From positions 868,001 through 932,000 of the forward strand of contig JAHDYR010000025.1 in assembly GCA_019828565.1 (NCBI GenBank): a DNA stretch of 64,000 nt. Direction: 5' to 3'. The first letter of the stretch is position 1; each line of letters begins with the position of its first letter. A program made the translations under genes and the position numbers. Source of the stretch: Carpediemonas membranifera BICM (lineage: Eukaryota > Protista > Fornicata). The notes beneath the pieces are model-generated. The model was not told where the DNA came from, searched no databases, and saw only the letters and a program-made list of their open reading frames with translations. Shown in pieces: positions 2,541-63,309 of this stretch.

Positions 2541-4195
2541 TTATGATAGCTCTGGGCCGACGTCGACTGGGGCGATCTCCCAGGTCATTGATTTGACTGC
2601 ATCATGCTCCTTAATCGCGACCAACTCGGCCACCCCATCTGACACCGTCTTCGCGAAAAACCACTGGCCGGTGGAGTTGCGGAATGAGAGGGTGTATCTG
2701 CCTCTTATCCTAACCTGTCTGCTGTCAAAAGCCGTCGCCTCAAAGGGCACGCTGTACTGTTTGTCACGGCTGTACATGTGAGTGCGGCCCTCAGTGACCC
2801 AGATAAGAACGTATCCACAATAGAACCCCTTGACCTTCTCTCGGAAGCGGAGCGGGGTGGCTGTGAGGCATTTGTCGCCCTTGCTGTATCCAGGCAGCAG
2901 GCCCGACTGGGCGATATGAAAGGGAAGTTCGCCGGCGAACAGCAGCTGGCGGCCGCTGAGGAAGATGCTGCAGTAATTCCCAATGCTTGGTATCCGGTCG
3001 ACCCTGAAGGGCAGCTCCTCGAAGCCAGTCATCTCGTTCTCGTGCCCGTGTCCCAGCCGGCCACAGAAGTTCCATCCGCTGATCATTCGTCGATCGCCCA
3101 TGGAGAGGATAACAGTGTTCCATGCATGCATGATGTGATCTGGGACAAAGCCATACGGCACGGCGACTGGGTGGAAGAGGTGGCTGTTCTCCCGCTCGAC
3201 TGGGCCAACATACCATGTTGAATCATCACCAGTCATGACAGTGCCGACCGGAGTGAAGATGAACGTTCGAGCTCTTATCAGCGACACACCGGTCACCACC
3301 CTGTGCTTCTCCCAGGCGGGCAGGCTGGCCTCGCGCTCGGCGACCTTGGGGCAGTTGGGGAAGGTGAGGCGGGTCGGGTCGACGAACCCAGATGACTTGA
3401 ACCCCAGCTGACCATTGTAGCAAGCGCCCCAGCCCCACAGACCCTTGGGGGTCCTGGCGATGTGGGTGAACCAGTCGCTGTAGACCTCGAGGGCCCGGGG
3501 CATCCTGGCCCTGGTGAGGGCGGTGTGGTGGTCAGTGTCGAGCATGAAGAGTCGGCCCATGTACATGTGGTGGTGGTAACATCCGTAACAGTTACCACAC
3601 TCATCCTCGTCACTGCACTGATAGCTCTCGCCGTCCTTCTCGGCGGCGTTCAGCGTGAAGAAGAACTTGCGGCAGAGGAACCAGAGGCACTTGGCCTCGG
3701 GCGTGAGAGCCTTGCGGATCTTGTCGTACATCTCGGTCTCATCTGGCCACTTCTCTCGAGCCTCGTTCAGCACCCTGTCCTCGAGGTCTGGGTTGGCCCC
3801 GCCACCCAGCAGACACGCCCACACCGCGCCCTGGTTCAGCGTGTGCATGGCGACCGGGAGCTCCTCGCCGTCCGCGAGCTCGACGTTCATGGACAGCGGG
3901 GGGCCGCTGGTGAGGATCGAGCAGGCGCGGTCGAGGAGGGCTTGCGCGGTTGGCTTGAGAGGGGGATCTTGCAGAGCGTGGCGAGGAGGGATTCGAGAGA
4001 CGGGGCGCTCGTTGGTGTAGCAGTGCTATCTGTTTTGTGCATCGAGGGCATTTGTTCGCCGAAGTGTCTGGAGTAGGCGCACTGGAGCAACGAGGGGATG
4101 TCCCCGGAGACGGAGGCCGTTGCGGTGAGCGACTCGCGGAATACGGAGCTCAGCGCATCTCTGATGGCCGATGGCGAGGAACTAGCGCTGCTCAT
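2541..4195 (-). pseudogene. RCC1-like repeat family copy 1, frameshifted (possibly a sequencing error)
   Basis: ORFs 3887..4204 and 2541..3890 join if one base is restored in the G run at ~3961-3965. Family motifs WGWG..NGQLG and GRLGHG. Confidence 0.75.
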
Positions 4196-4366
4196 CGCTT
4201 TCAACGCTCAGTTCGGTGATGGCCAAATTCAGACGACTTGCCGACTCCCCGACGCTAAACGTGTCGCCGCAGAGTGTCAGGCATGATGGGTCGACGCAGT
4301 CTGGTTGGTTTATTGGTGCGAGAACTGGCTCCGACCAAAGGGCAGCGCGTCACTCGACCACACGAT

Positions 4367-6019
4367 TCAGCCCCACACGTCCGCTGGCGTCAGCTCCACA
4401 ACATCCGCCGTCGGCTCGTCGACCCGTCTCAGCGCGCTCTTGCCGAGGCTAGTCGCGCCCATGGCCGCGAGGATGGCCCGCGCGAGCAGACCCAGCAACC
4501 ACCACTGGCCGGACGCGTCGCGGAAGGCAGGGGTGGGGAACGTCAAGGACGCAGCTGTTGCCTCGACCGGGACTTCTCCAGCGTCGGCAGTGCTGCGGTA
4601 GTTGGTGCGGCCCTCAGCCACCCAGATCAGAACCGACCCATCGAGGTAAAACCCCTTGACCCTCTCTAGGAAAAGGAGCGGCGCCGGTGTGGGGCACACG
4701 TCATCTTCTCTGTACCCAGGCAGCAGGCCCGACTGGGCGATATGTTCGGGAACATGGCCAGCGAACAGCAACTGATGGCCGCTGAGGAAGACGTTGAAGT
4801 CGTATCCCGTGGAAACAATCCGGTCGACCCTGAAGGGCAGCTCCTCGAAGCCAGTCATCTCGTTCTCGTGCCCGAGTCCCAGCCGGCCACAGAAGTTCCA
4901 TCCGCTGATCATTCGTCGATCGCCCATGGAGAGGATGATATTGTTGGCATCATCGTGTAGCATATCACTTGGTATAAAGTCAGCGGGCACGGCGACTGGG
5001 ATGAAGCCGTCATTCTCAACGGGCCCTGTGAACCAGATCCGATCATGGCCGGCCATGACGGTGCCCGCGGGTGTGAGTATCCAGACTGCGTCGAACATAA
5101 TATGTACAGCGATGATCATCGTGTCTTTGCCCCAAGCGGGCAGGCTGGCCTCGAGCTCGGCGACCTTGGGGCAGGCGGGGAAGGTGAGGCGGGTCGGGTC
5201 GACGAACCCAGATGACTTGGACCCCAGCTGGCCATATTCGTTGTAGCCCCAGCCCCACAGACCCTTGGGCGTCCTGGCGATGTGGGTGGTCCAGTCGATG
5301 TAGACCTCGAGGGCCCTGGGCATCCTGGCCCTGGTGAGGGCGGTGTGCCTGGCAGTGTCGAGCATGAAGAGTCGGCCCATGTACATGCGGTGGTGGTAGT
5401 ATCCACTACAGCTGCACTGATATCTCTCACCGTCCTTCTCGGCGGCGTTCAGCGTGAAGAAGAACTTGCGGCAGAGGAACCAGAGGCACTTGGCCTCGGG
5501 CGTGAGAGCCTTGCCGATCTTGTCGTACATCTCGGTCTCATCTGGCTCCTTCTCTCGAGCCTCGTTCAGCACCCTGTCCTCGAGGTCGGGGTTGGCCCCG
5601 CCACCCACCAGACACGCCCACACCGCGCCCTGGTTCAGCGTGTGCAGGGCGACCGGGAGCTCCTGCCCTGGCGCGAGCTCGACGTTCATGGACAGCGGGG
5701 GGCCGCTGGTGAGGATCGAGCGGGCGCGGTCGAGGAGGGCTTGCGCGGATGGTTCGAGAGGAGGGATCTTGGAGAGCGTGGCGAGGAGGTATTCGAGAGA
5801 ATTGCCATCCTTCGGCGCGTCTGTGGTTGTATGATTGTAGATAAACGTCCTTAATGCGTTCAGCATGCCAGATCTGAGCGGGATTTCCTCATTGAAGTGA
5901 CGCTGGTACGCGCAGGCGATGAGCGAGGGGATGTCGCCTGCGATGCTGCTCGTGGCCGTGATTGAGAGCCGATGGGCCGCGATCAGCGCCTCTCGCGTCT
6001 TTTTGCTTCCATTGCTCAT
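4367..6019 (-). CDS. RCC1-like repeat family copy 2
   Basis: Start MSNGSKK is shared with paralogs. WGWGYNEYGQLG and GRLGLGH motifs. Divergent C-terminus. Confidence 0.8.
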   Translation of the reverse strand: MSNGSKKTREALIAAHRLSITATSSIAGDIPSLIACAYQRHFNEEIPLRSGMLNALRTFIYNHTTTDAPKDGNSLEYLLATLSKIPPLEPSAQALLDRARSILTSGPPLSMNVELAPGQELPVALHTLNQGAVWACLVGGGANPDLEDRVLNEAREKEPDETEMYDKIGKALTPEAKCLWFLCRKFFFTLNAAEKDGERYQCSCSGYYHHRMYMGRLFMLDTARHTALTRARMPRALEVYIDWTTHIARTPKGLWGWGYNEYGQLGSKSSGFVDPTRLTFPACPKVAELEASLPAWGKDTMIIAVHIMFDAVWILTPAGTVMAGHDRIWFTGPVENDGFIPVAVPADFIPSDMLHDDANNIILSMGDRRMISGWNFCGRLGLGHENEMTGFEELPFRVDRIVSTGYDFNVFLSGHQLLFAGHVPEHIAQSGLLPGYREDDVCPTPAPLLFLERVKGFYLDGSVLIWVAEGRTNYRSTADAGEVPVEATAASLTFPTPAFRDASGQWWLLGLLARAILAAMGATSLGKSALRRVDEPTADVVELTPADVWG

Positions 6020-7763: not shown

Positions 7764-8645
7764 TTAAAAGTGGGGCCCGAGAAGGCTGAGGTTCATCCTC
7801 CTGGTGAGGTCCTCGTTTGTTCTGATGGCGTCAGCGACATAGCTGCGGAGGGAGGTGACGTCCTTCCATGTGCCCATTGAGAGGATCACCTCCAGCGGGA
7901 CTCCTGATAGAGCCATCTCCGACGCTGCCCCCCTTACGGAAGCTGTGGAGACCCGTCCGTGGACCGAACAACGCCTTCACGACTCGTCGGAGGTGTGCGG
8001 CTGTGAGCGGTTTGTCTCTGCTCAGGCGCCCGTTGATTATGACTCGCCAGATGGGGGTGTCATCAGCCAGGTAGTGTGTGCCCTCGACCCAGCGTCTAAG
8101 TGCCAAGGCCGGGTTGAAGGCGGCTGATAGCCATACGTATGGTACGCGCTTCTTAACTCCCGTTAGGATGGTCTTGGTCCGCTGAATGTGTAGGAGAATG
8201 TCGCCGTTCTTGAGTAGCTCCAGGTCGGCCGGGCATAGGGAGAGTATCTCGATGCCTCTGGACACCGTCAGATAGGCGACTGCCCCAAAGAGACATGCCT
8301 GATATGACTCAAAGTCGTCACTCCGGCGCCCCAGTGCCTCGATCATCTCAGCCTTGGTGATGGCGCGCGAGCCGCCGGTAGTTCCCGCCGTGCTGGCGCC
8401 CTTAGCCGCCTGCTTAACGATGTACTTGGAGTTGGCGGGCGGATGCCAGTCTTTGAGGAACTCCTGTAGCTGAACAATCCAGTAGCCCTTCCTCGCCACG
8501 TTCGATGGCCCGCAGAAGGAGCCTTCGTCCTTGAGGAAGGCTACAAGCTGGTCTCGATCCGACAGGCTGCGATCGCGAGAGCCTTCGAACCTGGCCACCC
8601 AGCCGGCCACCGTCCGAGCAGACGCGTGATTAAGGTGAATCACTC
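7764..8645 (-). pseudogene. Tyrosine recombinase of family A copy 1, disrupted
   Basis: SRGIE, TKT and HSFRKG motifs. Cut by the LINE insertion, plus one extra C at ~7928-7933 relative to copy 2. Confidence 0.85.
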
Positions 8646-8658
8646 AATTTTCCGCACC

Positions 8659-11600
8659 ATGGGCAAAAGTAGTTCTGGCTACAGAGGCCCAATCTTAGCG
8701 AAAGACACTGGTCCGCAACCACAAAGTACCACTGCTGCTCAAAGCAGTATCGCCGACCAACGCTTCCTGACGAGGAAGCACCTCAAATATGTTTCATCCG
8801 CCCCTCCTGTCCTCAAAAGACAACTACTAGCAGGCATTGCCTTTATTGGGGACCCCGTAATCATCCATCCCTTCAAAACTGAGCTTGCAACACACTCATC
8901 GACGGGCAATTTCGTCTCGGTGGCAATCCCAAACCTAAAACGGGACAACGCCCGCTATAAGCGGGCTAAGGATGCCTGTAATGACCTACTCCAAGATGCT
9001 GAGCACCTTGCAGCTGCATTTGGGCTCTCCATCCGGGAAGGTATCCTCAAACTCTTTCCCCTCATTGCCTATGATCTTGTCCACACGGTTGGAACGCTTA
9101 AGGCTGCCCTAATCCACTGCAGGTTCACGGGACTCCCCCCAGCTAGCAGCATGGACTGGAGCAAGTTCGCAGATTTCATCTCCGCCAGATGCCCTACAGT
9201 GTTAGACCAACGGAACGATCCTTGGCCTCCAACCATATCCACTGTCCCGAACTCTCCGAGCCTGACATGGCAGGCAGTCGGTCAAAGAGAGCCTCTTGGT
9301 CCCCGCATCGCTCACTCCGGCCGGCCCGGCCCCATTGTATCTCCGGATGGTCTCAACCTCACGCCGTTCATGGGCCTCGAGGTAATCCACTTACTGTATG
9401 GCGCCTCTCCCGTGTTGGGAGGACATGCGATGACTGAGCTTTATGCCGAATGGGGTGGAGCCACAGCGGCCGACCTTCAGTCTTCCTTATCGAATACCTT
9501 ATCAGACAGCCTTATCTCTCCCATTCGCCGGAAGGCCTATCCAGTCGATGACTCTACTATATCCATAAGTTCCTGTTCAAACTCTGATGTTGAGCTCGCA
9601 AGCCCGATCCCTGTTAGCGTGGAAGAGGTTGCGCGGCAGATTCGGAAAGAAATATCGTCTTGCGAAGAGAACAGCATTTATCCATCATCCCCGATCGTAG
9701 CTGAGGAGCCTAACGCCCGTTGGGGCCCTCTCATGAGCATCCCAGTTCACGCCGACGGCAACTGTGGCCTTCACTCACTTGCTGTCTCTCTGGGTATGAC
9801 GGGCCTGACGAGACGAGAAGCCGTGTCGAAACTTGCCTCCGCCATCCAGAATGGTACAGTGGATCTTAACTCCTCGTGGAGATCCACGGTGCGCACTTTA
9901 ACCACACACACCACCGCTAGCGACATTGGTAGTGCCTTCCTATCCACCACAGACCTCCGCAATATTGCATCGCTCTTTGGAAAAAATGTGCTTATTGCTC
10001 ATCGATATGATGCCAACACAGTCTCAGTAACCATCCCAGCATTATCCGAGTTCTCTACACTTCCTCTCAATATTGACGCGCTCAAAACGATGCTCAAAAC
10101 CGATTACATCCTCATTAGACTGAGTGCTCTGCACTTCACGCCTCTTTTTCCGTCTGTGAGGAGCGCAGAAGCAAGGCGCCTGCAATATGCTGAATATCGT
10201 CCAAGAAGAGCCCCCTCTAGTGTGGCTCGCAACAACATCGCCGCTGAAGGCCTCGATAGCGCCCCCCTCTAGTGTGGCCCGCAACAACATCGCCGCTGAA
10301 GGCCTCGATAGCGCCCCCTCTAGTGTGGCTCGCAACAACATCGTCGCTGGAGGCCTCGATAGCGCCCCCTCTAGTGTGGCCCGCAACAACATCGCCGCTG
10401 GAGGCCTCGATAGCGCCCCCCTCTAGTGTGGCCCGCAACAACATCGCCGCTGAAGGCCTCGATAGCGCCCCCTCTAGTGTGGCCCGCAACAACATCGCCG
10501 CTGAAGGCCTCGATAGCGCCCCCTCTAGTGTGGCCCGCAACAACATCGCCGCTGAAGGCCTCGATAGCGCCCCCTCTAGTGTGGCCCGCAACAACCGTGA
10601 TGGCGTCCATGGCGCTCTCATAGGCTTGTCTGGCAAGAGAGAGGGTCCTGTTTCTCATATCCTAGTGGTCGACTTTGAAGGACTAGGAACTGCCGTAGAC
10701 CGCAGAGCCACCAAACAGAGTCGCGTCTCATATCCCGTAGAGGCCGGCGCCACACTCCTAGCCCGCGTCAAGGATCCTGAAACGGGGATAATGATGTGGG
10801 ACGTCGCAGGGGTCCACTGGGGCGGCTTAGAAGTTGATATCCCAGCGCAGTTAATGCAGACAGCTTTATACCAAGCGGCAGTTGTTCATGGGTGTCCTCC
10901 CATGAGCTTCAGAGTACACCCCGACCACCCCGGGATCTCATTCCCCAGCCCGACCGACTGGCTTCACCACCTCACGGTCATAGTGAGCTCCCTCCCGAAC
11001 TGCATCATGGTCGCCAAAGACCCGAGACTTGAGAACTCCGTCCTAGAGTCATGGGTCTCGGAAAGCGATGCCCCCTTCCTTGACAAGGTCTATGACATAA
11101 GTGATCTAGAGTCCATAGACAAAAGATCCTTTGGGCATATCCATGACTACTGCCGTTCACCCGAGTTCTCTGAGGCGATGTCGATAGCCCAATGTCTCAC
11201 AATGGTGAAGTGCCCCTGCCCGTACCACATTGGAACAGATCCAGGCTACCATTGTGCTCTCAGTGACACTGTAGCTTTCGCGGCGGTACTGCACACAGTC
11301 TCATGTCTCGACCGAACATCTAGGGGAGCTATCACATCCACGTACTCTGAAATCACTGATGCATGGAGGAAAGACTTGGATGTCCTCATCGGCAACTGGT
11401 CCTCTCTCCTGCCCGACCTGGCCGTGCTACTACTCCAAGACCTCCACCTGCCAACGCTTGAGGAGCTGCACCACATCCTCAAGGAGTACGTAATAGCACC
11501 TAAGGGTGGCTGCTCCTTCCCCACAGGTGATAGGGCCAGACAGGCTATGACGTGCCGTCAATTTATTGCAGTGCGGAGCCCAGCTCGGCGAGGGTGGGAA

Positions 11601-14600
11601 TGGTTTGATCCTCTTGCCAAGATGATAGCGGTGGCGGATGCGGCAGGCATAGTCCCTCCAAACAGCCTAGAACAGCCATTCATCAGGATAGCGACGGTGA
11701 ATAACGACAGCTCCTTCAGCAATCAGTTGACGGCTCAGCAAGTTTACTGGGAGTGCCCTCCTCACCGAGACCTACCGCAATCTGCTGCAGAGCTTCTGGC
11801 TCTCAACGTTCCTCCCTCGGCAGACAACTCCAAAGGAGTAGTCAAGAGGTCCTACAGAGCGCCGGATCATTGGTTTCTAGTCCCGAGAATCCCCAACAAG
11901 CCAGTGCGAGGGCTCCGCAAAGTCAGACTGAGAGGGCCCATGACTCGAGGAGACATGGATGCCCTCATACAGAAGGCAGAAACAGCATGGGTCAGCGAAG
12001 CGTGGGACCTTTCTCCGGTGTTCAAAGCTCTCCAGAGTGCCCGAGCTCACGACGGTAACTGGAGTAAGGTTGAGCCACCGGCTTCTTCCACGCCAGCTCC
12101 AAGCTTAGCCACGCGAGTCTCGCCTGCGACCTTCAGGAATCAGAGAGGGCGAAGTCAAGCAGGTAGACGACCAGTAAATGGTCACCTCTACTCGTGGAAT
12201 TGCACATCACTCAACATCACCAAGATGACTCTTGCTCTAGTACAAGACGTGGACATCATGGCCATTCAGGAGCTATGGTGGTGGGCCCAGTCCCCGGAGC
12301 TGCCCACAACGAATGACAAGGTCCTGCTATACCACGGAGTGATCAAGTCAGAGTCCGAGACAAAGCATCTAGGCGTAGGCATCATGCTGAGGAAGGAATT
12401 AGCTGAGCTCTGCACATACGTCGAGAACCAACCCCACTCTCCAAGGTTGATTCAAGCTGACCTAGGCTGCGTGTTTGTAACAGCTGGCAAACTGAAGGTC
12501 CGTGTCATGTCCATCTATAGTCCATGCACGGGAGCACAAGCCAAGAAAGAGTTCCACACTCTACTGTCCTCCGAGGTGAAGAAAGCTATTGAGCAAGGGC
12601 TCCAAGTTCTTGTCATGGGAGACTTCAACACGAACCTACTAGATCCATCGACGCTGTGGGCTACCACCCTAAAGGAGTGTGGCTTGAGACTGGTAGTGCC
12701 CGACGGCCCGACCTTCATGGACAGAGTAATTGATGGCATCGCAGCAACACCTAAGCTGGCTGATCTCATCAAGAAGCCGCTCACAGTATCCCTTGAACCC
12801 AAAGGACACAGAGCGGTTGTAGCAAGATCAGGCATAACGGGTTACTTTCGCACGAGGAGCAAGGCAACAGCAGTCCTCAACGAAAGACATGTGGCTAACG
12901 TACTTGAATGCAGCAAGGATCATCGAAAGGCGAGGACTCTCCTGAGGAACATCAGCCACCTTGATGTCGACCAAGCCTTTCAAAGCCTGACGTCGACTAT
13001 CAACCGATGGGCGTTGGTGGACACTGCGGCCTCACATGAAGTGAGAGAAGTCGAGAGAGCAGAAGACTACGACCACTGGTTTGTCGCCGGAGAGCAGATC
13101 GGTATTTCCCCTGAACGGCTCTATGAGCTCATCATTGAGGATCATCGCCACCAACATCAGCTCAAGGAGAGGACGAGCAGAGGCCCCAAAGCTCTCGTGT
13201 GCTCTGAGCTATCATCAGCAATGCTATCAGTAGCGTTAGCATCCTCGGAGAGCCACGCCCACTCAACACTCAAAGCCTACCATGCCCGAGCCAAGCGAGT
13301 CTCTGAGAGCATGGATGTCATGTCCCCTGAATTCTTTAGATACGTCCATTGGAAGCTTTTTGAAGGGGCAGGCCAGAGTGTCTGGTCTTCGCAGAGACCT
13401 GGAAGGCTTACTCAGAGGACCCGGCCTTCCTGCTACCACCACAGTAGGAGGCAGAGTGATCACCAACCGAGAAGAAGTAGCCAAGGCCTTCGAGGAGTGG
13501 TATGCGTCAGTATCATATGTGGCAGGAGCAGTAGAACCATCCATCTCTCGCCCCGATATAGAGCTCGAAATCACGGACACTCTCCTGGAAGGGGCTCTCA
13601 AATCTGCCAAGAATAGATCAGCCCCAGGCAGTGATGGACTAACCCCGGCAATTTTCAAATATTGCCCAGTCCTCAAGGAGGCGCTCAAGACTCTGCTACA
13701 GAAGTGCATTGACCAACTCAAGACCCCAGCAGAGTGGCATACCGCCGTGGTAATTCCATTGAAAAAGCCCGGCTCTACTAGCGATGCTCCTGTGGCGTTC
13801 AGACCTATCTCCCTACTTTCCACAGCCCACAAGGTGCTCGGCACAATGATGATCCGCACGATTGACCGAGACAACCCTCTTCCCCCTGAACAATACGGTG
13901 CAAGGCCGGGTGTTTCATCGGTTGATGCACTATGGGCTATTGAGCACGCGAGACGTGGGTTCAAAGCGACCCACATTGGGACTCTGGACGTGGCTAAGGC
14001 CTTTGACCGTGTCCCGAGGAGAGATGCATTGGACTCGTTGAGGGGGGAACAGAAGGGCCATTGAGATGTTGAAGGAGATGCATTTGCACACAAGGATCTC
14101 TATGCGAGGTAGCAGCACTAGCGCCGCTACCAACACAGGAGTACGGCAAGGATGCACCACTGCTCCCTTCATCTTCACAAGATACCTTGCGGAAGTCCCT
14201 CACATCATTGCAAGCTTAACCGCTCTAGGGAAGGAAGCAATTGAGAAGCTTCCTCCCGACATAGAGACCCTGAGACGAGTGGCAGCAAGGCCGTGCGTTC
14301 CCTGGATTGTCACAGTCCTGTTCGTTGATGACATTACAATAGTAGCTCCCTCCCTTAAGTGGTTGGAGGCAGCACTTACGGCGGCATGGACATGCATGCT
14401 AGCGCTATCCTTGGAGCCCAACGATAAGACCACCTATGTCTCAGAGGACGACACCCCCTCCCTCACCATCCATGGCAATCCAGTCATTAAGAGAGACGCG
14501 GTCAAGCTCCTAGGGGTCCTCTTCGATACGTCCCGAGACTTCTCCACCCAGAATAGGACTATGGGCGAAAGGATAGACAGAGAGCTACGACTACTGAGAG

Positions 14601-15463
14601 CTAGCGGCGTGATGCACTCCAAGTTCTGTCCTCGCATTGTAGAGGTCTACACCCTCCCCAAGCTGCTGTACGGGTGGAGCGTCTGGGCTAATCATAAGGC
14701 TGTCTCCCAGGTAGGCAAGCTTGCATCGGCAGCCCTAAGGATCAGCCCAACTGCATCGGAGGCGAAGTACCTGGAGCTAGGCTGGCTGCATCCAGAGGCA
14801 ATGCTCCTGCTGGACAGATTCAAGCAAGGGGTGAGATGGGCGAGAATCCATCCGGGCAAGGATCTCCCAGACTGCATTGCTGAGGCACAAGGCAGCCTTG
14901 GCCTGTCCCACTCCGACAGCCTTGACCTAGCAGCCTGTCGAGCAGCCCAGCTCTCTCACGACATAATCTGCCGTGGTAACAAAGTGGCTGTCAGGAGATA
15001 CGTCACGGAGTCGGCACTCACCCGCCCTTTTACCCGCTCTAACTACCCGGCCAGGCAGCCATACCTCGACCATCTAACGGCTGGGCCAGCGAAGCGCCTC
15101 GCGATGCTACGGCTATCGTGTCTACCAATGCCAACGAGAGGGGCTCTTCCTGACGCGTGGCAGCCGGTCAGGGGAATCCTACAGGACCTGAAGGATGAAC
15201 CGGAAGCCGCCGCAGCTCTTGAGGCATGTCCTCTCTGTCAGGGTGAGGCCATCGCCGCGGCTGTGATTGAGATCCTGACGTCCCCTACCAAGACCTTAGC
15301 AGTGCTGAGATCCAGGACGTGGGTTGTCCTGAACCAGACCCACTTGGCTAAGTGCGACCACTTCAAGATTAACCCCATCCTCCTTTTCAAGGACCCCCTG
15401 ACCCTGAGCAGGCGTGACGACGCCAAGCTCACACATATGTTGAGTGTACTTTGTGACGCGTGA
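8659..15463 (+). CDS. LINE polyprotein (~2266 aa after removing four +1 homopolymer insertions): OTU protease, 17-aa repeats, DEDDh exonuclease, APE endonuclease, RT, C-terminal CxxC
   Basis: Motifs ADGNC...LHF; VVDFE...HCALSD; SWN, AIQE, SIYSP, GDFN; GVRQG, LFVDD; CPLC. Extra bases at ~10262, ~10416, ~13357 and ~14042 account for each frame change. Confidence 0.8.
10210..10595 (+). repeat. 51-bp tandem repeat (~7.5 copies) encoding APSSVARNNIAAEGLDS
   Basis: Directly visible near-perfect units. Confidence 0.95.
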
Positions 15464-36804: not shown

Positions 36805-36896
36805 ATGAGAATGAACATCAACATAAAAACGCCAGAAATTATTAATAAAGATCCAAACTATATTCATTCCCTATCCAAAACATATCTAACATCACA

Positions 36897-45297: not shown

Positions 45298-46963
45298 TTA
45301 CTGCTGGGCCCACGGGTTGATGTCGACTGGGATGATCCCATAGTGCGAAACAGGCGCTTTGCACTTGACCAGCTTAGCCACCCCATCTGACACCGTCTTC
45401 GCCTCAAACCACTGGCCGGTGATGTTGCGGAATGAGAGGGTGTATCTGCCGCTAACCTGCCTTCTGTCAAAAGCCGTCGCCTCAAAGGGCACGCTGTAAT
45501 GTTTGTCACGGTTGCGCATGTGAGTGCGGCCCTCAGTGACCCAGATAAGAACGTATCCACAATAGAACCCCCTGACCTTCTCTCGGAAGCGGAGCGGGGT
45601 GGCTGTGAGGCACTTGTCGCCCTCGCTGTACCCATGCAGCAGGCCCGACTGGGCGATATGAGGGAGAACTTCGCCGGCGAAGAGCAGCTGACGGCCGCTG
45701 AGGAAGTAATTGAAGGTATTATCTAGCCCAATGCTTGGTATCCGGTCGACCCTGAAGGGCAGCTCCTCGAAGCCGGTCATCTCGTTCTCGTGACCGAGTC
45801 CCAACCGGCCATACCGATTGTCACCGCTGATCACCTGCCGATCGCCCATGGAGAGGATGACAGTCCAGTTGCAATGCATGATGTGATCTGGGACAAAGCC
45901 AGCGGGCACGGCGACTGGGTGGAAGCGTTCGGTGTTCGCCTCGACTGGGCCGACATACCTTCTTGGACCCTCACCAGCCATGACAGTGCCGACCGGGGTG
46001 AGTATGAACGTCTGCCATCTCTCCATCGACAAATCGGTCACCACCCTGTGCTTCTCCCAGGGGGGCAGGCTGGCCTCGAGCTTGGCGACCTTGGGGCAGG
46101 CGGGGAAGGTGAGGCGGGTCGGGTCGACGAACCCAGATGACTGGAACCCCAGCTCACCATTGTAGCAAGCGCCCCAGCCCCACAGACCCTTGGGCGTCCT
46201 GGCGATGAGGGTGGTCCAGTCGCTGTAGACCTTGAGGGCCCTGGGCATCCTGGCCCTGGTGAGGGCGGTGCGGTGCATCGTGTCGAACATGAAGAGTCGG
46301 CCCATGTACATGCGGTGGTGGTAACATCCGTAACAGTTACCACACTCATCCTCGTCACTGCACTGATAGCTCTCGCCGTCCTTCTCGGCGACGTTCAGCG
46401 TGAAGAAGAACTTGCGGCAGAGGAACCAGAGGCACTTGGCCTCGGGCGTGAGAGCCTTGCGGATCTTGTCGTACATCTCGGTCTCATCTGGCCACTTCTC
46501 TCGAGCCTCGTTCAGCACCCTGTCCTCGAGGTCGGGGTTGGCCCCGCCACCCAGCAGACACGCCCACACCGCGCCCTGGTTCAGCGTGTGCATGGCGATC
46601 GGGAGCTCCTCGCCGTCCGCGAGCTCGACGTTCATGGACAGCGGGGGGCCGCTGGTGAGGATCGAGCAGGCGCGGTCGAGGAGGGCTTGCGCGGATGGTT
46701 CGAGAAGGTGGATCTTGCAGAGCGTGGCGAGGAGGGATTCGAGAATTGCCATCCTTCGGCGCGTCTGTGGTTGTATGATTGTGGATAAACGTCCTTAATG
46801 CGTTCAGCACGCCAGATCTGAGCGGGATTTCCTCATTGAAGTGACGCTGGTACGCGCAGGCGATGAGCGAGGGGATGTCGCCTGCGATGCTGCTCGTGGC
46901 CGTTATTGAGAGCCGATGGGGCGCTATCAGCGCCTCTCGCGTCTTTTTGCTTCCATTGCTCAT
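45298..46963 (-). pseudogene. RCC1-like family copy 4, frameshifted
   Basis: 2-bp loss in a GA run at ~46741-46744 relative to copy 2; otherwise full length. Confidence 0.75.
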
Positions 46964-53074: not shown

Positions 53075-54264
53075 TTACTGCTCGGGCCACGGGTCGACGT
53101 CGACTGGGATGATCTCATAGTGCAATGTGGGTGCCTCGCACTCGACCATCTCAGCCACCCCATCTGCCACGCCCGTCACCTCGAACCACTGGCCGGTGAT
53201 CGAGAAGGCCCAGCTGCCACTAACCCACCGTCCGCCAAATATTGTGGCCTCAAAGGGCACGCTGTAATGTTTGTCACGGCTGTACATGTGAGTCTGGCCC
53301 TCAGTGACCCAGATAAGATCATAGTCACAAAAGAATCCCTTGACTCTCTCTCGGAAGCGGAGCGGGGTGGCTGTGAGGCACTTGTCGCCCTCACTGTACC
53401 CAGACAGCAGGCCCGACTGGGCGATAGGACGGGGAACTTCGCCAGCGAAGAGCAGCTGGCGGTCGCTGAGGAAGACATTAAACGAAAAGTCTGGTATGAT
53501 CCGGTCGACCCTGAATGGCAGCTCCTCGAAGCCGGTCATCTCGTTCTCGTGACCGAGACCCAGCCGGCCATACCGATTGTCACCGCTGATCACCTGCCGA
53601 TCGCCCATTGAGAGGATGACAGTATCGTACAGGTCTTGCATGATGTGGTCTGGGACAAATCCAGCGGGCACTGCTACTGTGTGGAAGAGGTGCCTGTTCT
53701 CCTCCTCGACTGGGCCGACATACCATGTTGAATCCGCACCCGCAACTATGCCGACCGGGGTGAGTATGAACGTCTGCCATCTCTCCATCGACAAATCGGT
53801 CACCATCCTGTGCTTCTCCCAGGGGGGCAGGCTGGCCTCGAGCTCGGCGACCTTGGGGCAGGCGGGGAAGGTGAGGCGGGTCGGGTCGACGAACCCAGAT
53901 GACTGGAACCCCAGCTCACCATTGTAGCAAGCGCCCCAGCCCCACAGACCCTTGGGCGTCCTGGCGATGAGGGTGAACCAGGCGCTGTAGACCTCGAGGG
54001 CCCTGGGCATCCTGGCCCTGGTGAGGGCGGCGTGATAGTCAGTGTCGAGCATGAAGAGTCGGCCCATGTACATGCGGTGGTGGTAGCATCTGTCGGGCAC
54101 AGGGCACTGATAGCTCTCGCCGTCCTTCTCGGCGACGTTCAGCGTGAAGAAGAACTTGCGGCAGAGGAACCAGAGGCACTTGGCCTCGGGCGTGAGAGCC
54201 TTGCCGATCTTGTCGTACATCTCGGTCTCATCTGGCCACTTCTCTCGAGCCTCGTTCAGCACCC
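53075..54264 (-). pseudogene. RCC1-like family copy 5, 5'-truncated
   Basis: Homology starts abruptly at RVLNEARE; upstream 54265..54367 is unrelated. Confidence 0.75.
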
Positions 54265-54367
54265 TTCCACCACTCTCACCACTTCGGAGGAGCAGCGGGG
54301 CCGACAAGCGGGCCAGCTTGAGCGAGTGATAAATGGTTGAGAGACTTGGAGTGGGGTCGGCTTTCAT

Positions 54368-55984
54368 TTATAAACCATACGGGTCGATGTCGACGGGAAT
54401 GATGTCTTCCCACGACTCGGGCGTCTCGCACTCGACTGGCTCAGCGCCAGCCTCGGATACCCTGAACAACTGGCCAGTAGCGTCGCGGAAGGAGCTGAAG
54501 GCTTCATCTTCTTGAGTTGTGATACCAACTGCCGTCGCCTCAAAGGGCACGCTGTACTGGTTTTCTCCGTCGCATAGATGAGTGCGGCCCTCAGTGACCC
54601 AGATAAGATCATAGTCACAAAAGAATCCCTTGACTCTCTCTGGGAACCGGAGCTGGGTGGCTGTGAGGCACACACCATCCTCGCTGTATCCAGGCAGCAG
54701 GCCCGACTGGGCGATATGAGGGAGAACTTGGCCGGCGAACAGCAGCTGGTGGCCGCTGAGGAAGTAATTGAAGGTATTATCTAGCCCAATGCTTGGTATC
54801 CGGTCGACCCTGAAGGGCAGCTCCTCGAAGCCAGTCATCTCGTTCTCGTGCCCGAGTCCCAGCCGGCCACAGAAGTTCCATCCGCTGATCATTCGTCGAT
54901 CGCCCATGGAGAGGATAACAGTGTAGAATGAATCCACGATGTGATCTGCGACAAAGCCAGTGGGTACGGCGACTGGGTGGAAGAGGTGCCTGTTCTCGTC
55001 CTCGACTGTGCCGACAAACGCTTTCGCATCCGCACCAGCCATGACAGTGCCGACCGGAGTGAAGATGAACGTTCGAGCTCTTATCAGCGACACACCGGTC
55101 ACCACCCTGTGCTTCTCCCAGGGGGGCAGGCTGGCCTCGAGCTTGGCGACCTTGGGGCAGGCGGGGAAGGTGAGGCGGGTCGGGTCGACGAACCCAGACG
55201 ACTCGAACCCCAGCTGACCAGAGCCGTTATCACCCCAGCCCCACAGACCCTTGGGTGTCCTGGCGATGTGGGTGGACAAGTTGCTGTAGACCTCGAGGGC
55301 CCTGGGCATCCTGGCCCTGGTGAGGGCGGTGTGATAGTCAGTGTCGAGCATGAAGAGTCGGCCCATGTGCATGAGGTGGTGGTAGCAATCGCCGTATACT
55401 GTGTACTGATAGCTCTCGCCGTCCTTCTCGGCGACGTTCAGCGAGAAGAAGAACTTGCGGCAGAGGAACCAGAGGCACTTGGCCTCGGGCGTGAGAGCCT
55501 TGCCGATCTTGTCGTACATCTCGGTCTCATCTGGCCACTTCTCTCGAGCCTCGTTCAGCACCCTGTCCTCGAGGTCTGGGTTGGCCCCGCCACCCAGCAG
55601 ACACGCCCACACCGCGCCCTGGTTCAGCGTGTGCATGGCGATCGGGAGCTCCTCGCCGTCCGCGAGCTCGACGTTCATGGACAGCGGGGGGCCGCTGGTG
55701 AGGATCGAGCGGGCGCGGTCGAGGAGGATTTGCGCGGCTGGTTCGAGAGGGGGGAGCTTGGAGATCATGGCGAGGAGGGATTCGAGAGACGGGGCGCTCG
55801 TTGGTGTAGCAGTGCTCTTGTTGTTGTGCATCGAGGGCATCTGCTCGCCGAAGTGTCTGGAGTAGGCGCACTGGAGCAACGAGGGGATGTCCCCAGAGAT
55901 GGAGGCCGTTTCGGTGAGTGAGGCGCGATATGCGGAGATCAGCGCATCTTTGATGGCCGATGGCGAGGAGCTAGCGCTTTTCAT
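54368..55984 (-). CDS. RCC1-like family copy 6
   Basis: Intact 538 aa with family motifs. Confidence 0.85.
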   Translation of the reverse strand: MKSASSSPSAIKDALISAYRASLTETASISGDIPSLLQCAYSRHFGEQMPSMHNNKSTATPTSAPSLESLLAMISKLPPLEPAAQILLDRARSILTSGPPLSMNVELADGEELPIAMHTLNQGAVWACLLGGGANPDLEDRVLNEAREKWPDETEMYDKIGKALTPEAKCLWFLCRKFFFSLNVAEKDGESYQYTVYGDCYHHLMHMGRLFMLDTDYHTALTRARMPRALEVYSNLSTHIARTPKGLWGWGDNGSGQLGFESSGFVDPTRLTFPACPKVAKLEASLPPWEKHRVVTGVSLIRARTFIFTPVGTVMAGADAKAFVGTVEDENRHLFHPVAVPTGFVADHIVDSFYTVILSMGDRRMISGWNFCGRLGLGHENEMTGFEELPFRVDRIPSIGLDNTFNYFLSGHQLLFAGQVLPHIAQSGLLPGYSEDGVCLTATQLRFPERVKGFFCDYDLIWVTEGRTHLCDGENQYSVPFEATAVGITTQEDEAFSSFRDATGQLFRVSEAGAEPVECETPESWEDIIPVDIDPYGL

Positions 55985-56548
55985 TGGTTTCAGCGCTCAG
56001 TTCGGTGGTTGCCAAATTCTGACTGCCGACTCGCCGACCACCGACGCCAGCACTGCGGATCAGACGATGAGATGCGGGCGATGTTCAGCCTCACAGCTTC
56101 CTTGACAGTAAGATTCCTGGGTAAACTCTCGAGTCCTTCAGCCGAGTACCGCAATGCCCTCGACGGCAGGGTGGGGCCTGTTGTCCATGGTCATGGACAA
56201 CAGCCGAGTTCTTCAACGAATTCTCCTCATGGGGTGTTTGATCGCCTCTGTTCTTTGTGAGCGGCATATCCCTCCAGGTTTGAGTGACCCATTGTCTGCC
56301 GGCGATGTGAAACGGGCGATTACTGCGGCCCCTTGAGTGTTGACTTTGGGGCCGACAGTACTGAGGTCCGCGTCTGTGTGCGAGAAGGCATTTGGGTGAT
56401 GAATATGATGAGGTTGACCCATCCCGCCATTCCGATGGGGGTAAAGCAAAGGAAGCGGACACATGCCGGCTTGGCCTTATACTGGCACTGCCGACAATGA
56501 AGCACTCAATCTCGGGCAAATCTCATGTGCCTTAACGGAACGTGCTGA

Positions 56549-57586
56549 ATGAATTCAGTGAATGTTGTTTTAGAAACGCCGATCAAAGCACTTGCGTCAC
56601 TTCTAACCAAGAAATGTTCAGATGTGGCGGCTGTTGTCCAACTAAGCCCATCTACGCCCGAGGTTGAAAGAACAGCCGCAGTGAAGAACGCCGACGTGCT
56701 CGTTTCCTTCAATCCTTCAGCCAAGCTGCTTGATACGGCTATTGACCGGTGTTCTCTCCTCGCCATCCCATTTGCAGGCATCGATAAGCACACTGCCCTA
56801 CTTCGTCATTACCCCCAGCTGCGTTGCATGAACCTACACACCAACGCGCCTCTCGTTGCCCAGCATGCGATGGCACTCTTACTGTCACTCACCAATCAAA
56901 TCTGCACGTTTGATCGCTCATTGCGGCGGCGCGAGTGGCGGCCAACTGACCCGAGCCCCGCCATGACGGCCTCAACAGACTTTGACGCCTGGATGGGCCC
57001 AAGCAGCCTGCTATGCCCTGACTACACCATCGGCCTGATGGGATACGGCGCCGTTGGCACGAGGATCGCCGCCATGCTCGCCCCGTTCGGCTGCCGCGTC
57101 ATCAGCTACGTCCAGCACCCAGGCCCGGAACAGTACGGCCCCGACAGCCTCGACGCATTCATGGAAGAGTGTGATGCGGTGGTTTCGTCCCTTCCAACCA
57201 CTCCGCAGACTATTGGAATCGTCGGCAAGAAGCAGCTTGACCTGCTTGGGCCAAAGGGCTTGCTCGTCGTCGTCGGCAGAGCATCGCCGTTCGTTGAGGC
57301 AGACCTTTACGAAGCCCTCAAGGAGCAACGTATCCGTGGCGCGGCGATGGACGTCTTTTGGAACGAGCCCCAGCCCTCTGCCAGGCACCACGACGACACG
57401 CTCCCCTTCACCCACCCCTTTGATACCCTGCCCAACATTGTACTCTCCCCGCACCGTGCATGGCTCCCCATGGCGGACAGCATGACCCAGGAGTGGTACT
57501 TTGAGCCGATCGCCCAGAATATACTGCGGATAGCACAGGGAAGAGATGACCTCGTGTCGCTTGTAGATGTTAATAAAGGCTACTAG
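56549..57586 (+). CDS. D-isomer-specific 2-hydroxyacid dehydrogenase
   Basis: VAQHA, GYGAVG Rossmann motif, VGRA, GAAMDVF..EP, SPHRA. Confidence 0.92.
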   Translation: MNSVNVVLETPIKALASLLTKKCSDVAAVVQLSPSTPEVERTAAVKNADVLVSFNPSAKLLDTAIDRCSLLAIPFAGIDKHTALLRHYPQLRCMNLHTNAPLVAQHAMALLLSLTNQICTFDRSLRRREWRPTDPSPAMTASTDFDAWMGPSSLLCPDYTIGLMGYGAVGTRIAAMLAPFGCRVISYVQHPGPEQYGPDSLDAFMEECDAVVSSLPTTPQTIGIVGKKQLDLLGPKGLLVVVGRASPFVEADLYEALKEQRIRGAAMDVFWNEPQPSARHHDDTLPFTHPFDTLPNIVLSPHRAWLPMADSMTQEWYFEPIAQNILRIAQGRDDLVSLVDVNKGY

Positions 57587-57850: not shown

Positions 57851-59473
57851 ATGAGCAGCGCTAGTTCCTCGCCATCGGCCATCAGAGATGCGCTTATCTC
57901 CGCATTCCGCGAGTCGCTCGTTGTAACGGCCTCCATCTCCGGGGACATCCCCTCGTTGCTCCAGTGCGCCTACTCCAGGCACTTCGGCGTGCAGATGCCC
58001 TCGATCCACAAAGCAGAGAGCACTTCTGCACCAACGAGCGCCCCGTCTCTCGAATCCCTCCTCGCCATGATCTCCAAGCTCCCCCCTCTCGAACCATCCG
58101 CGCAAGCCCTCCTCGACCGCGCCCGCTCGATCCTCACCAGCGGCCCCCCGCTGTCCATGAACGTCGAGCTCGCGGATGGCGAGGAGCTCCCGGTCGCCAT
58201 GCACACGCTGAACCAGGGCGCGGTGTGGGCGTGTCTGCTGGGTGGCGGGGCCAACCCAGACCTCGAGGACAGGGTGCTGAACGAGGCTCGAGAGAAGTGG
58301 CCAGATGAGACCGATATGCATGACAAGATCTGCAACGCTCTCACCCCCGAGGCCAAGTGCCTCTGGTTCCTCTGCCGCAAGTTCTTCTTCACGCTGAACG
58401 TCGCCGAGAAGGACGGCGAGAGCTATCAGTGCCCTGGGTACGACAGATGCTACCACCACCTCATGTACATGGGCCGACTCTTCATGCTCGACACGATGCA
58501 CCGCACCGCCCTCACCAGGGCCAGGATGCCCAGGGCCCTCGAGGTCTACAGCAACACATGGACCCACATCGCCAGGACGCCCAAGGGCATGTGGGGCTGG
58601 GGGTATAGCGAACTTGGCCAGCTGGGGTTCCAGTCGTCTGGGTTCGTCGACCCGACCCGCCTCACCTTCCCCGCCTGCCCCAAGGTCGCCAAGCTCGAGG
58701 CCAGCCTGCCCCCCTGGGAGAAGCACAGGGTGGTGACCGGTGTGTCGCTGATAAGAGCTCGAACGTTCATCTTCACTCCGGTCGGCACTGTCATGGCTGG
58801 TGCGGATGCGAAAGCGTTTGTCGGCACAGTCGAGGACGAGAACAGGCACCTCTTCCACCCAGTCGCCGTGCCCGCTGGCTTTGTCCCAGACCACATTATG
58901 CATGCATGGAACAGCGCTGTCATCCTCTCCATGGGCGATCGGCAAATGATCAGTGGAGATAATGAGTATGGCCGGCTGGGACTCGGGCACGAGAACGAGA
59001 TGACTGGCTTTGTCGAGCCGGCATTCAGGGTCGACCGGATCATAGCCTTTGAATTCGACTTCAACGTCTTCCTCAGCGGCCGCCAGCTGCTGTTCGCCGG
59101 CGAACTTCCCTTTCATATCGCTAGGACGGGCCTGCTGCCTGAGTACAGTGAGGACGCTCGCTGCCTCACAGCCACCCCGCTCCGGTTCCCAGAGAAGGTC
59201 AAAGGGTTCCATTGTGAAGATTTTCTCCTGTGGGTCACTGAGGGTCGCACTCACCTGTGCCACTACAACAAGCAGTACTGTGTGCCCTTTGAGGCGGCAT
59301 TTGGCGCAAGACTTGCAAATGGCGACTGGGTCGACTCATTCCGCGACTCTACCGGACAGTGGTTTAGTGTGGGAAGTGTGACAGATGGGGTTGCAACGAT
59401 GGTCCAGTGCGAGGTACCTTCTTCACAATGGGAGATCGCCCCAGTCGACGTCGACCCGTGGACCGAGCAGTAA
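57851..59473 (+). CDS. RCC1-like family copy 7
   Basis: Intact 540 aa. Confidence 0.85.
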   Translation: MSSASSSPSAIRDALISAFRESLVVTASISGDIPSLLQCAYSRHFGVQMPSIHKAESTSAPTSAPSLESLLAMISKLPPLEPSAQALLDRARSILTSGPPLSMNVELADGEELPVAMHTLNQGAVWACLLGGGANPDLEDRVLNEAREKWPDETDMHDKICNALTPEAKCLWFLCRKFFFTLNVAEKDGESYQCPGYDRCYHHLMYMGRLFMLDTMHRTALTRARMPRALEVYSNTWTHIARTPKGMWGWGYSELGQLGFQSSGFVDPTRLTFPACPKVAKLEASLPPWEKHRVVTGVSLIRARTFIFTPVGTVMAGADAKAFVGTVEDENRHLFHPVAVPAGFVPDHIMHAWNSAVILSMGDRQMISGDNEYGRLGLGHENEMTGFVEPAFRVDRIIAFEFDFNVFLSGRQLLFAGELPFHIARTGLLPEYSEDARCLTATPLRFPEKVKGFHCEDFLLWVTEGRTHLCHYNKQYCVPFEAAFGARLANGDWVDSFRDSTGQWFSVGSVTDGVATMVQCEVPSSQWEIAPVDVDPWTEQ

Positions 59474-61440: not shown

Positions 61441-61662
61441 GGCGGGTTGGTGTGTTTCGGCTGCAACGGCTGCGAGATAAATTGCTGGGGTCGGTGAGAT
61501 GCTTGGGCTGACTCGAGAGTTTACCCAGGATTAACGAGGGTTAACGAATGGTTTGAGCTTGACCATCGCCCGCATCTCATCGTCTGATCCGCAGTGCTGG
61601 CGTCGGTGGTCGGCGAGTCGGCAGTCAGAATTTGGCCATCACCGAACTGAGCGCTGAAACCA

Positions 61663-63309
61663 ATGAACAGCGCTAGCTCCTCGCCATCGGCCATCAGAGA
61701 TGCGCTTATCTCCGCATTCCGCGAGTCGCTCGTTGTAACGGCCTCCATCTCCGGGGACATCCCCTCGTTGCTCCAGTGCGCCTACTCCAGACACTTCGGC
61801 GTGCAGATGCCCTCGATCCACAACAACAAGAGCACTGTTACACCAACGAGCGCCCCTTCTCTCGAATCCCTCCTCGCCACGCTCTCCAAGCTCCCCCCTC
61901 TCGAACCAGCCGCGCAAGCCCTCCTCGACCGCGCCCGCTCGATCCTTACCAGCGGCCCCCCGCTGTCCATGAACGTCGAGCTCGCGGACGGCGAGGAGCT
62001 CCCGGTCGCCCTGCACACGCTGAACCAGGGCGCGGTGTGGGCGTGTCTGCTGGGTGGCGGGGCCAACCCAGACCTCGAGGACAGGGTGCTGAACGAGGCT
62101 CGAGAGAAGTGGCCAGATGAGACCGATATGCATGACAAGATCCGCAAGGCTCTCACGCCCGAGGCCAAGTGCCTCTGGTTCCTCTGCCGCAAGTTCTTCT
62201 TCACGCTGAACGTCGCCGAGAAGGACGGCGAGAGCTATCAGTACACAGTATACGGCGATTGCTACCACCACCGCATGTACATGGGCCGACTCTTCATGCT
62301 CGACACTGACTATCACGCCGCCCTCACCAGGGCCAGGATGCCCAGGGCCCTCGAGGTCTACAGCGCCTGGTTCACCCTCATCGCCAGGACGCCCAAGGGT
62401 CTGTGGGGCTGGGGCGCTTGCTACAATGGTGAGCTGGGGTTCCAGTCATCTGGGTTCGTCGACCCGACCCGCCTCACCTTCCCCGCCTGCCCCAAGGTCG
62501 CCGAGCTCGAGGCCAGCCTGCCCGCTTGGGAGAAGCACAGGATGGTGACCGATTTGTCGATGGAGAGATGGCAGACGTTCATACTCACCCCGGTCGGCAC
62601 TGTCATGGCTGGTGGCAGTTCAGAAAAGTTTGTCGACCCGGTCGAGCGGGAGAAAAACAAACACCTCTTCCACCCAGTCGCCGTGCCCGGTGGCTTTGTC
62701 CCAGATCACATCATGCATGTGGGTCCGTTGCATGCAGTGACTGTTATCCTCTCCATGGGCGATCGGCAGGTGATCAGCGGTGACAATCAGTATGGCCGGC
62801 TGGGACTCGGGCACGAGAACGAGATGACTGCCTTCGAGGAGCTGCCCTTCAGCGTGGATCTGATCATGCCCAGCCTTGCAAGAAACTGCAACGTCTTCCT
62901 CGGTGACCGTCAACTGCACTTCGCCGGCCTGGCTCTCCTTCATGTCACCCACTCCGGCCTGCTGCCTGGGTACCGCGAGGGCAACCTATGCCTCACAGCC
63001 ACCCAGCTCCGGTTCCCAGAGCGTGTCAAGGGGTTCTTCTGTAATACATCTGCGCTCGCCTGGGTCACTGAGGGCCTCACTCATCTGTGCATAAGAGACA
63101 TCCGGATGTACTGTGTGCAATTTGAGGCGACGGCTTTTGGTCAGTCATTACCCGGTGTCCCAGGGGCTGATGTGTTGCGCGACTCCACTAGCCAGTGGTT
63201 CAGGGTGGCAAGAGTCACAAATCGGGTGGCTGAGATGGTCGAGTGCGAGGTCCCTTCTTCACAATGGGAGATCGCCCCAGTCGACGTCGACCCGTGGCCC
63301 GAGCAGTAA
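61663..63309 (+). CDS. RCC1-like family copy 8
   Basis: Intact 548 aa. Confidence 0.85.
   Translation: MNSASSSPSAIRDALISAFRESLVVTASISGDIPSLLQCAYSRHFGVQMPSIHNNKSTVTPTSAPSLESLLATLSKLPPLEPAAQALLDRARSILTSGPPLSMNVELADGEELPVALHTLNQGAVWACLLGGGANPDLEDRVLNEAREKWPDETDMHDKIRKALTPEAKCLWFLCRKFFFTLNVAEKDGESYQYTVYGDCYHHRMYMGRLFMLDTDYHAALTRARMPRALEVYSAWFTLIARTPKGLWGWGACYNGELGFQSSGFVDPTRLTFPACPKVAELEASLPAWEKHRMVTDLSMERWQTFILTPVGTVMAGGSSEKFVDPVEREKNKHLFHPVAVPGGFVPDHIMHVGPLHAVTVILSMGDRQVISGDNQYGRLGLGHENEMTAFEELPFSVDLIMPSLARNCNVFLGDRQLHFAGLALLHVTHSGLLPGYREGNLCLTATQLRFPERVKGFFCNTSALAWVTEGLTHLCIRDIRMYCVQFEATAFGQSLPGVPGADVLRDSTSQWFRVARVTNRVAEMVECEVPSSQWEIAPVDVDPWPEQ

Follow-up and report, generated by a model that had tools for sequence, protein, structure and literature searches.

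Tract exchange between neighbouring copies of an expanded gene family encoding predicted RCC1-like propellers in Carpediemonas membranifera

We analysed a stretch of 64,000 nucleotides of the Carpediemonas membranifera strain BICM genome (contig JAHDYR010000025.1 of assembly GCA_019828565.1, here called C13; C13:868001-932000), referred to as the window. It contains eight copies, c1 to c8, of a large gene family whose clustered members are mosaics of one another. Coordinates below are window positions unless a contig is named. The assembly comprises 24.2 Mb in 69 contigs with a guanine plus cytosine (GC) content of 57.1% and was built from Nanopore R9.4 reads with Illumina polishing (PMC8516963); the sequence that we searched had 24,237,836 bases in 69 contigs. 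The GC content of the window is about 58%, and its open frames are long and intron-free. Across the window the family copies are scattered among retroelements and ordinary genes, including a Sec24-like open reading frame (ORF), a glucosyltransferase-like ORF, a MIZ-finger protein and a 2-hydroxyacid dehydrogenase.

The full-length intact copies in the window are c6, c7 and c8. The most divergent one is c2, and its C-terminal stretch is aberrant. The gap in c1 may be a Nanopore homopolymer error instead of the mark of a true pseudogene. The c3 pseudogene lacks its stop codon, and its frame runs on to 37074. This read-through (36800-37074) enters the 3′ end of an opposite-strand ORF of 2730 residues, which is proline-rich and repeat-rich in its C-terminal third. 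In most copies with a SASSSPSAI-type N-terminus, homology extends from about 90 bp upstream of the ATG to near the stop codon; c7 and c8 remain alike for at least 100 bp past the stop. The upstream stretch of about 90 bp is conserved in all intact copies examined. It marks where the homologous unit ends on its 5′ side and is probably a 5′ untranslated region or core promoter. A transposable element was ruled out as the unit, as most copies are alike only between these limits and no terminal repeats are present; the unit therefore consists of a gene and its leader and is not mobile DNA.

Table 1 Positions of the family copies and other features in the window.
Feature	Position	Strand	Description
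c1	2541-4195	−	SASSSPSAI-type N-terminus; frame broken by a 1-bp gap after base 3966 in a C run
c2	4367-6019 (MSNGSKK start) or to 6121 (upstream ATG)	−	One open frame
c3, pseudogene	35165 to about 36800	+	8-bp deletion after 35170; 11-bp deletion after 35830
c4, pseudogene	45298-46963	−	2-bp deletion adjoining base 46746; MSNGSKK-type N-terminus
c5	53075-54367	−	5′-truncated; in tandem, starts directly after the c6 stop
c6	54368-55984	−	Intact, 538 amino acids
c7	57851-59473	+	Intact, 540 amino acids
c8	61663-63309	+	Intact, 548 amino acids; copy used for structure models
Conserved upstream stretch, about 90 bp	61573-61662	+	At least 90% conserved among the 15 SASSSPSAI-type copies examined, including c6, c7 and c8
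Canonical RCC1-like protein	33471-34955	+	494 amino acids; single-copy, outside the expanded family
Opposite-strand ORF entered by c3 read-through	36897-45089	opposite to c3	2730 residues
2-Hydroxyacid dehydrogenase gene	56549-57586
Non-LTR retrotransposon-like unit	8626-15463	+
Second ORF of this unit	10272-13616
Further ORF of this unit	14066-15463
First DIRS-like copy	16454-19785	−
Second DIRS-like copy	20342-23092	−

A preliminary description of the window, made from its letters, had reported variable blocks whose sharing patterns conflict between copies. Our alignment, including the frame-shifted upstream parts, reproduced these patterns throughout. The N-terminus is of the MSNGSKK type in c2, c3 and c4 and of the SASSSPSAI type in c1, c6, c7 and c8. 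The block after GESYQ reads CSDEDECGNCYGC in c1 and c4 and YTVYGDC in c3, c6 and c8, and the block after WEKHR reads GVSLIRART in c1, c6 and c7 and DLSMERWQT in c4, c5 and c8. Further along, WNFC occurs in c1, c2 and c6, DNRY in c4 and c5, DNQY in c3 and c8, IGLDNTFNYF in c4 and c6, YCGYVL in c1 and c4, FCDYDL in c5 and c6, and VPSSQWEI in c3, c7 and c8. The second and third blocks occur in all four combinations (c1, c4, c6 and c8). The same description had also pictured the blocks as interchangeable. At the genome scale they do not form a small set of cassettes: each block exists as 26-32 distinct variants among 34 full-length copies. Variant sharing is mostly limited to neighbouring copies, where it marks recent local exchange.

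At the DNA level, the closest copy shifts along the gene among the eight copies, in patches that are 99-100% identical. The nearest relative of c3, for example, is c4 at the 5′ end, then c6, then c1 and finally c8. The pairwise homoplasy index (PHI) gave z = −15.1 for eight copies and −51 to −52 for six to seven copies, and no value this low arose in 1000 permutations. By the four-gamete rule of Hudson and Kaplan, at least 46-57 recombination events are needed, a figure inflated by recurrent mutation. The longest exact tracts were 300 bp between c3 and c8, 264 bp between c5 and c8 and 238 bp between c6 and c7, each longer than in all 300 permutations. The c3-c8 tract lies in the 3′ half of c3 (36369-36668 = 62862-63161), and the c6-c7 tract crosses variable loops (58632-58869 = 55203-54966). 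A 134-bp tract of c3 is identical to c6, and c4 has exact tracts of 130-142 bp in common with c1, c5, c6 and c8. Exchange also reaches beyond the window: a variable stretch of c5 (53593-53734, 142 bp) is 100% identical to a copy at C13:934496-934637, the next best match in the genome being 86%, and this identity reflects another recent exchange. PHI, the Hudson-Kaplan minimum and the exact tracts agree with the shifting nearest relatives, and no single tree fits the copies, as had been proposed.

To examine how sharing depends on distance, we compared 51 copies on 12 contigs and counted the pairs that share an exact tract of at least 150 bp. Such pairs made up 51% of those less than 20 kb apart, 25% at 20-100 kb, 2% at more than 100 kb on the same contig, and 0.3% on different contigs. 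Segmental exchange between paralogues is thus the best reading of the mosaics, resting on the patches, PHI, the tracts and the decay with distance. Through non-allelic homologous recombination (gene conversion), tracts from tens up to hundreds of bases long have repeatedly passed between the clustered copies; therefore each gene is a mosaic. Pseudogenes had been named as the donors. The broken copies c3 and c4 do share exact tracts of 130-300 bp with intact copies, so their participation stands, but the direction of donation is not readable from the tracts.

The family is specific to Carpediemonas and massively expanded. A word-based protein search found at least 130 annotated family proteins, and the genome holds about 170 copies or more, the majority of them clustered on contigs C13 and C67. 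A six-frame genome search with c8 gave 80 scored matches out of 577 first-look candidates, and one conserved 195-bp block gave 176 first-look candidates genome-wide. All 120 protein matches listed for c8 were from C. membranifera, with J8273 locus tags and mostly the annotation 'hypothetical'. The cluster on C13 extends mainly from about 650 kb to the contig end at 1,024,508 and is densest past 710 kb; further clusters lie on contigs C67 and C3, and scattered members elsewhere. In 50 loci plus the window, whose three such frames are also among the loci, 39 single open frames cover the whole protein. In some annotated C. membranifera proteins of 1000-1500 residues, the N-terminal module of the family lies a long way from the start or occurs more than once, with a maximum of three occurrences. 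Such proteins probably result from tandem copies joined into one gene model, or from fusion to other genes.

Two public sequencing runs cover the region. They are of equal size, contain the same contigs and look like one data set filed twice. The runs are probably RNA, because the intergenic stretches 53075-53274 and 56075-56474 are bare and a contig of about 1 kb lies on the dehydrogenase gene. Over the family, the run contigs are 86-242 bases long and their sequences are present in two or three genomic copies each. They match variable stretches of c5, c6 and c7 exactly, and none bridges a mosaic junction. The contig on the dehydrogenase gene (1012 bases) has 18 extra letters past 56534 that differ from the genome at that place; splicing of the 5′ end, a leader or an adapter could account for them.

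Mosaics of this kind might also be produced during assembly, if short reads 'corrected' the wrong paralogue or long reads were mis-joined. The sequencing strategy and the single-base gap in the C homopolymer of c1, which is typical of such data, speak for such an artefact. However, the copies are 1.6 kb long and stand between unique single-copy genes, a length spanned by ordinary long reads. The exchanged blocks differ by 30-50% between variants, which is too much for mis-mapped polishing, and long open frames are kept in most copies. In addition, the run contigs match the variable stretches exactly, and the mosaic pattern extends to 51 copies on 12 contigs. We regard an artefact as very improbable.

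We then compared divergence along the gene. The synonymous divergence (dS) was 0.12-0.25 in the conserved anchors and 1.0-1.6 in the variable stretches, a difference of about ten-fold. The anchors are alike even at synonymous sites; therefore they are homogenised at the DNA level by exchange, and not by protein constraint alone. The ratio of non-synonymous divergence (dN) to dS, omega, was estimated by pairwise Nei-Gojobori and by parsimony counting on segment trees, which are crude counts on saturated, recombining data. Both methods gave about 0.3 for the framework, which is under purifying selection, and 0.6-0.8 for the variable blocks. Only 5 of 451 testable sites nominally showed dN > dS, fewer than expected by chance. 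Diversifying selection on the loops, which would have been expected from the preliminary description, was thus not detected, although saturation, uncertain loop alignment and recombination leave room for positive selection in this counting result.

The family protein is predicted to consist of an N-terminal helical module and a divergent seven-bladed RCC1-like β-propeller, and to be cytosolic. An AlphaFold2 model of c8, built with an alignment of 34 paralogues, shows residues 230-548 as a propeller with a predicted local distance difference test (pLDDT) score of 80-94. It has six four-stranded blades, and a seventh is probably completed by the modelled strands at 190-214. The top Foldseek matches in the PDB were all RCC1-like domains, namely those of WBSCR16, RPGR, UVR8, HERC2 and RCC1, with E from 4e-11 to 1e-7 and template modelling scores by target of 0.42-0.47. 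The sequence signal for RCC1 is marginal. With PF00415 (cut-off 21.7 bits), c2 scored 25.1, c7 21.5, c6 20.2 and c8 17.4 bits; with PF25390 (cut-off 150 bits), scores were 23-28 bits; and the best sequence match in the PDB had an E of 0.009.

To locate the variation on the predicted fold, loops were sorted into four classes by the strands of the model, and column entropy and counting omega were computed for each class. Mean column entropy was 2.54 in the A-B hairpins (omega 1.02) and 1.58 in the C-D loops (0.74), compared with 0.81 in the B-C turns (0.51) and 0.71 in the D-A linkers (0.44). The variable (A-B and C-D) and conserved (B-C and D-A) classes differed with a Mann-Whitney p of 4e-11. 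Loops that follow one another in an up-and-down sheet lie on its two faces in turn. Therefore, the variable classes would share one face of the modelled propeller and the conserved classes the other, and the variable blocks, placed non-randomly in the A-B hairpins and C-D loops as had been anticipated, map to one face by strand topology. In the alignment with HERC1, the variable block at 352-360 falls on the canonical GxxH hairpin, and the variable block after it on the 'N..GQLG' loop. In UVR8, these two elements bear residues of the face for dimerisation and partner binding. The N-terminal module and the loops of the opposite face are conserved down to 32% overall identity.

These results bear on whether the variation is of any use to the cell. 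Under neutral birth and death, the family would have grown by tandem and segmental duplication with passive exchange, its loops would be the unconstrained parts of a tolerant fold, and there would be no selected repertoire. Omega is below or near 1 throughout with no excess of sites with dN > dS, of the eight copies in the window three or four have a broken frame or a truncation, and tract sharing decays with distance as passive non-allelic recombination predicts. On the other hand, purifying selection acts on the framework, the 39 frames span the whole protein, and variability stays within a single loop set, the loops on the other side and the N-terminal module being conserved at low overall identity. 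Moreover, about 2% of the genes in a compact 24-Mb genome are unlikely to have been retained without use. Neutral evolution of this kind is a real but minor possibility.

The N-terminal part was modelled separately (residues 1-230, from 81 more diverse N-terminal parts), with a mean pLDDT of 83. In c8, the model shows a four-helix bundle at residues 8-97 and a helical module with three strands at 115-214. Pfam at E ≤ 10 gave nothing in the N-terminal 230 residues or in residues 100-200. Foldseek with this model gave no PDB match at E ≤ 0.001, VIA-align in its wide setting found only generic four-helix bundles for residues 3-101 (Z about 6), the ESM Atlas searched by shape and by features returned only the family's own cluster, and a sequence profile search of the PDB found no meaningful relative. 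When the N-terminal profile was compared with 1.84 billion representative proteins, 136 matches were obtained. Among the ten weakest, nine bear the name C. membranifera, and the remaining one is a 630-residue protein encoded at 2489-4381 of contig PPCM01003306.1 (4.6 kb, GC 63%) of GCA_002919055.1. Its parts are arranged as in the family, with a helical module followed by an 'LP...CKKF' stretch and then by RCC1 repeats. It is 22% identical to the N-terminal part of c8 and lacks a variable insert of 30-45 residues found in the family. Therefore, the architecture is older than the expansion. As far as the databases reach, it appears to be limited to this lineage.

The N-terminal part had been proposed to resemble an F-box. 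If these proteins were cryptic F-box adaptors, the N-terminal module would bind Skp1 and the variable propeller would recruit substrates to an SCF ubiquitin ligase. Such combinations are known, as F-box and RCC1 architectures occur together in animals, e.g., in FBXO24. Two near-identical Skp1 genes are present in the genome (C26:615291-615419 and C13:109459-109587), and less expanded relatives have a compact 'LP...CKKF' stretch of about 45 residues that loosely recalls an F-box. A six-frame genome search with PF00646 at E ≤ 0.01 found no F-box, a blank that is uninformative because the control genomes gave none either. However, the motif match to the canonical RCC1-like protein at 33471-34955, on which the proposal had been based, spans only 10 columns with an hhalign probability of 3%, and Pfam at E ≤ 10 found nothing in the N-terminus of that protein. 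In the family, no F-box was found by Pfam (E ≤ 10, residues 1-230), PDB profile, Foldseek or VIA-align, residues 115-214 not having been searched alone, and in the expanded family the putative box is split by the variable insert. Co-folding of Skp1 with residues 98-232 gave a score of 0.02 (mark 0.34), which speaks neither for nor against binding. An F-box adaptor function is therefore doubtful at best.

In accordance with the preliminary description, no signal peptide was found: the N-termini are polar and contain no signal-like segment, nor is there a clear membrane segment. The maximum 19-residue hydropathy over 34 proteins had a median of 1.41 and a highest single value of 1.86. This bears on a likeness to antigenic variation, which had also been suggested. 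In a programmed system of that type, silent pseudogenes would serve as an archive from which a single expressed gene, or very few, would be rewritten. The segmental mosaics, the broken copies that take part in exchange and the position of part of the family near a contig end are in line with such a system, and the Giardia VSP, Trypanosoma VSG and Plasmodium var families are likewise large and lineage-specific, with segmental mosaics and broken copies. Beyond mosaicism, no further feature of these systems was found. VSP, VSG and var products are secreted or membrane-anchored, belong to parasites and are expressed exclusively, whereas the proteins described here have neither signal peptide nor membrane anchor, so they are not surface-exposed, the organism is free-living, and exclusivity is not indicated. 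Most copies are intact and carry the same conserved 90-bp upstream region rather than depending on one expression site, contigs of the probable RNA run match several variants at once, and neither a dedicated nuclease nor a recombination signal was seen. A programmed system is hardly credible here.

The recombination background of the organism offers a possible mechanism. Metamonads lack Ku70/80 and DNA-PKcs, and the Fornicata have lost Rad51A and kept two Dmc1 genes (PMC8516963). Carpediemonas is probably haploid. An absence of replication origins has been proposed for it, and its replication may proceed by recombination that depends on Dmc1 (PMC8516963). With no Ku end joining, probable haploidy and reliance on Dmc1, paralogues would therefore be the main repair templates. 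A break in one copy would be repaired most readily from a paralogue, which fits the frequent short conversion tracts. The conserved framework would supply the homology at which exchange starts and ends, and loop variants would thereby be reassorted among neighbours. New loop variants may arise by ordinary mutation under relaxed constraint. The proteins themselves would make up a putative repertoire of binding modules inside the cell, with the variable face as their binding surface.

We consider it likely that this is a clustered mosaic family whose reassorted one-face loops serve as an intracellular binding repertoire. Several points weigh against this interpretation. The mosaic junctions are known solely from the polished Nanopore assembly. 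Recent tandem duplication would also yield distance-dependent tract sharing; such duplication does contribute to the decay, and the patchy identity within genes shows that exchange contributes too. Expression is weakly supported, as the run contigs are short, their type is uncertain and each of them fits two or three copies. The one-face assignment derives from the strand order in a predicted model, not from three-dimensional coordinates or an experimental structure. No positive selection was seen, and the loops may simply be unconstrained. A more specific proposal is that the N-terminal module docks to an effector (possibly Skp1 and SCF, by way of a cryptic F-box split in two), the variable face recognises many targets, and Dmc1-driven recombination among diverged paralogues renews the repertoire, in a haploid cell that lacks end joining and whose replication may itself depend on recombination. 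Candidate targets would be proteins of prey bacteria, of viruses or of mobile elements. This fuller proposal is rather unlikely as a whole, and a role in defence is pure speculation.

The retroelements between the family copies belong to two types. Within the non-LTR (long terminal repeat) retrotransposon-like unit, the second ORF starts with tandem 17-residue repeats and contains an endonuclease/exonuclease/phosphatase domain (E 2e-7), and a further ORF follows. The two DIRS-like copies adjoin each other, and several of their frames overlap. In a Pfam scan, the first contained an RVT_1 reverse transcriptase (E 1e-20) and a Phage_integrase tyrosine recombinase (E 7e-6), and the second has similar ORFs as judged by eye.

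If our interpretation is correct, one lineage-specific family that uses the RCC1 propeller as a variable binding scaffold accounts for about 2% of the genes in this compact genome of a protist. We know of no other such use of this propeller. Within the literature library searched, no paper paired 'Carpediemonas' with 'RCC1', and the genome paper makes no mention of RCC1 (PMC8516963). The family would also lend itself to reading out recombination in this organism, for which an absence of replication origins and a dependence on Dmc1 have been proposed (PMC8516963): exchange rate, tract length and mismatch tolerance between copies would be directly measurable in clonal lines. It would be a free-living, non-parasitic addition to the few intracellular repertoires diversified by sequence exchange.

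By its fold, the family belongs with the RCC1-like domains; its sequence is borderline and its N-terminal module is new. It shares the seven-bladed fold of RCC1, HERC1/2, RPGR, UVR8 and WBSCR16 and keeps traces of their 'G.N..G.LG' and 'WGWG' motifs. Ordinary RCC1-like domain proteins have conserved GxxH hairpins, whereas in this family these hairpins vary most. Known RCC1-like domain genes are single- or low-copy, in contrast to more than 100 members here, and among RCC1-like domain proteins the N-terminal module is unique to this family.

The HNWD/HET-E proteins of Podospora are intracellular WD40 propellers fused to NACHT signalling domains; their variability lies on one face and arises by recombination among repeats, both inside single genes and across the few genes of the group, and positive selection on them is documented. 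Both systems are thus intracellular propellers in which recombination makes one-face variability. In C. membranifera, however, the partners in exchange are entire paralogous genes, the proteins have neither a NACHT nor any other signalling domain, and positive selection is not shown. Plant NLR and leucine-rich repeat (LRR) receptor clusters, and other birth-and-death families moulded by gene conversion, are alike in genomic clustering, patchy exchange between neighbours, a conserved framework, hypervariable solvent-exposed positions and many pseudogenes, but the scaffold here is an RCC1 propeller instead of an LRR, without a nucleotide-binding or TIR domain, and no evidence connects the family with immunity. 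Among the features of an NLR-like repertoire, the family has one-face variability (p = 4e-11) and the clusters on C13, C67 and C3, but the crude counts gave no excess of dN. Its mode of evolution is that of a familiar clustered, exchanging multigene family; what is new is that its scaffold is a propeller, that a family this large occurs in the small genome of a free-living organism, and that it evolves against such a background of recombination.

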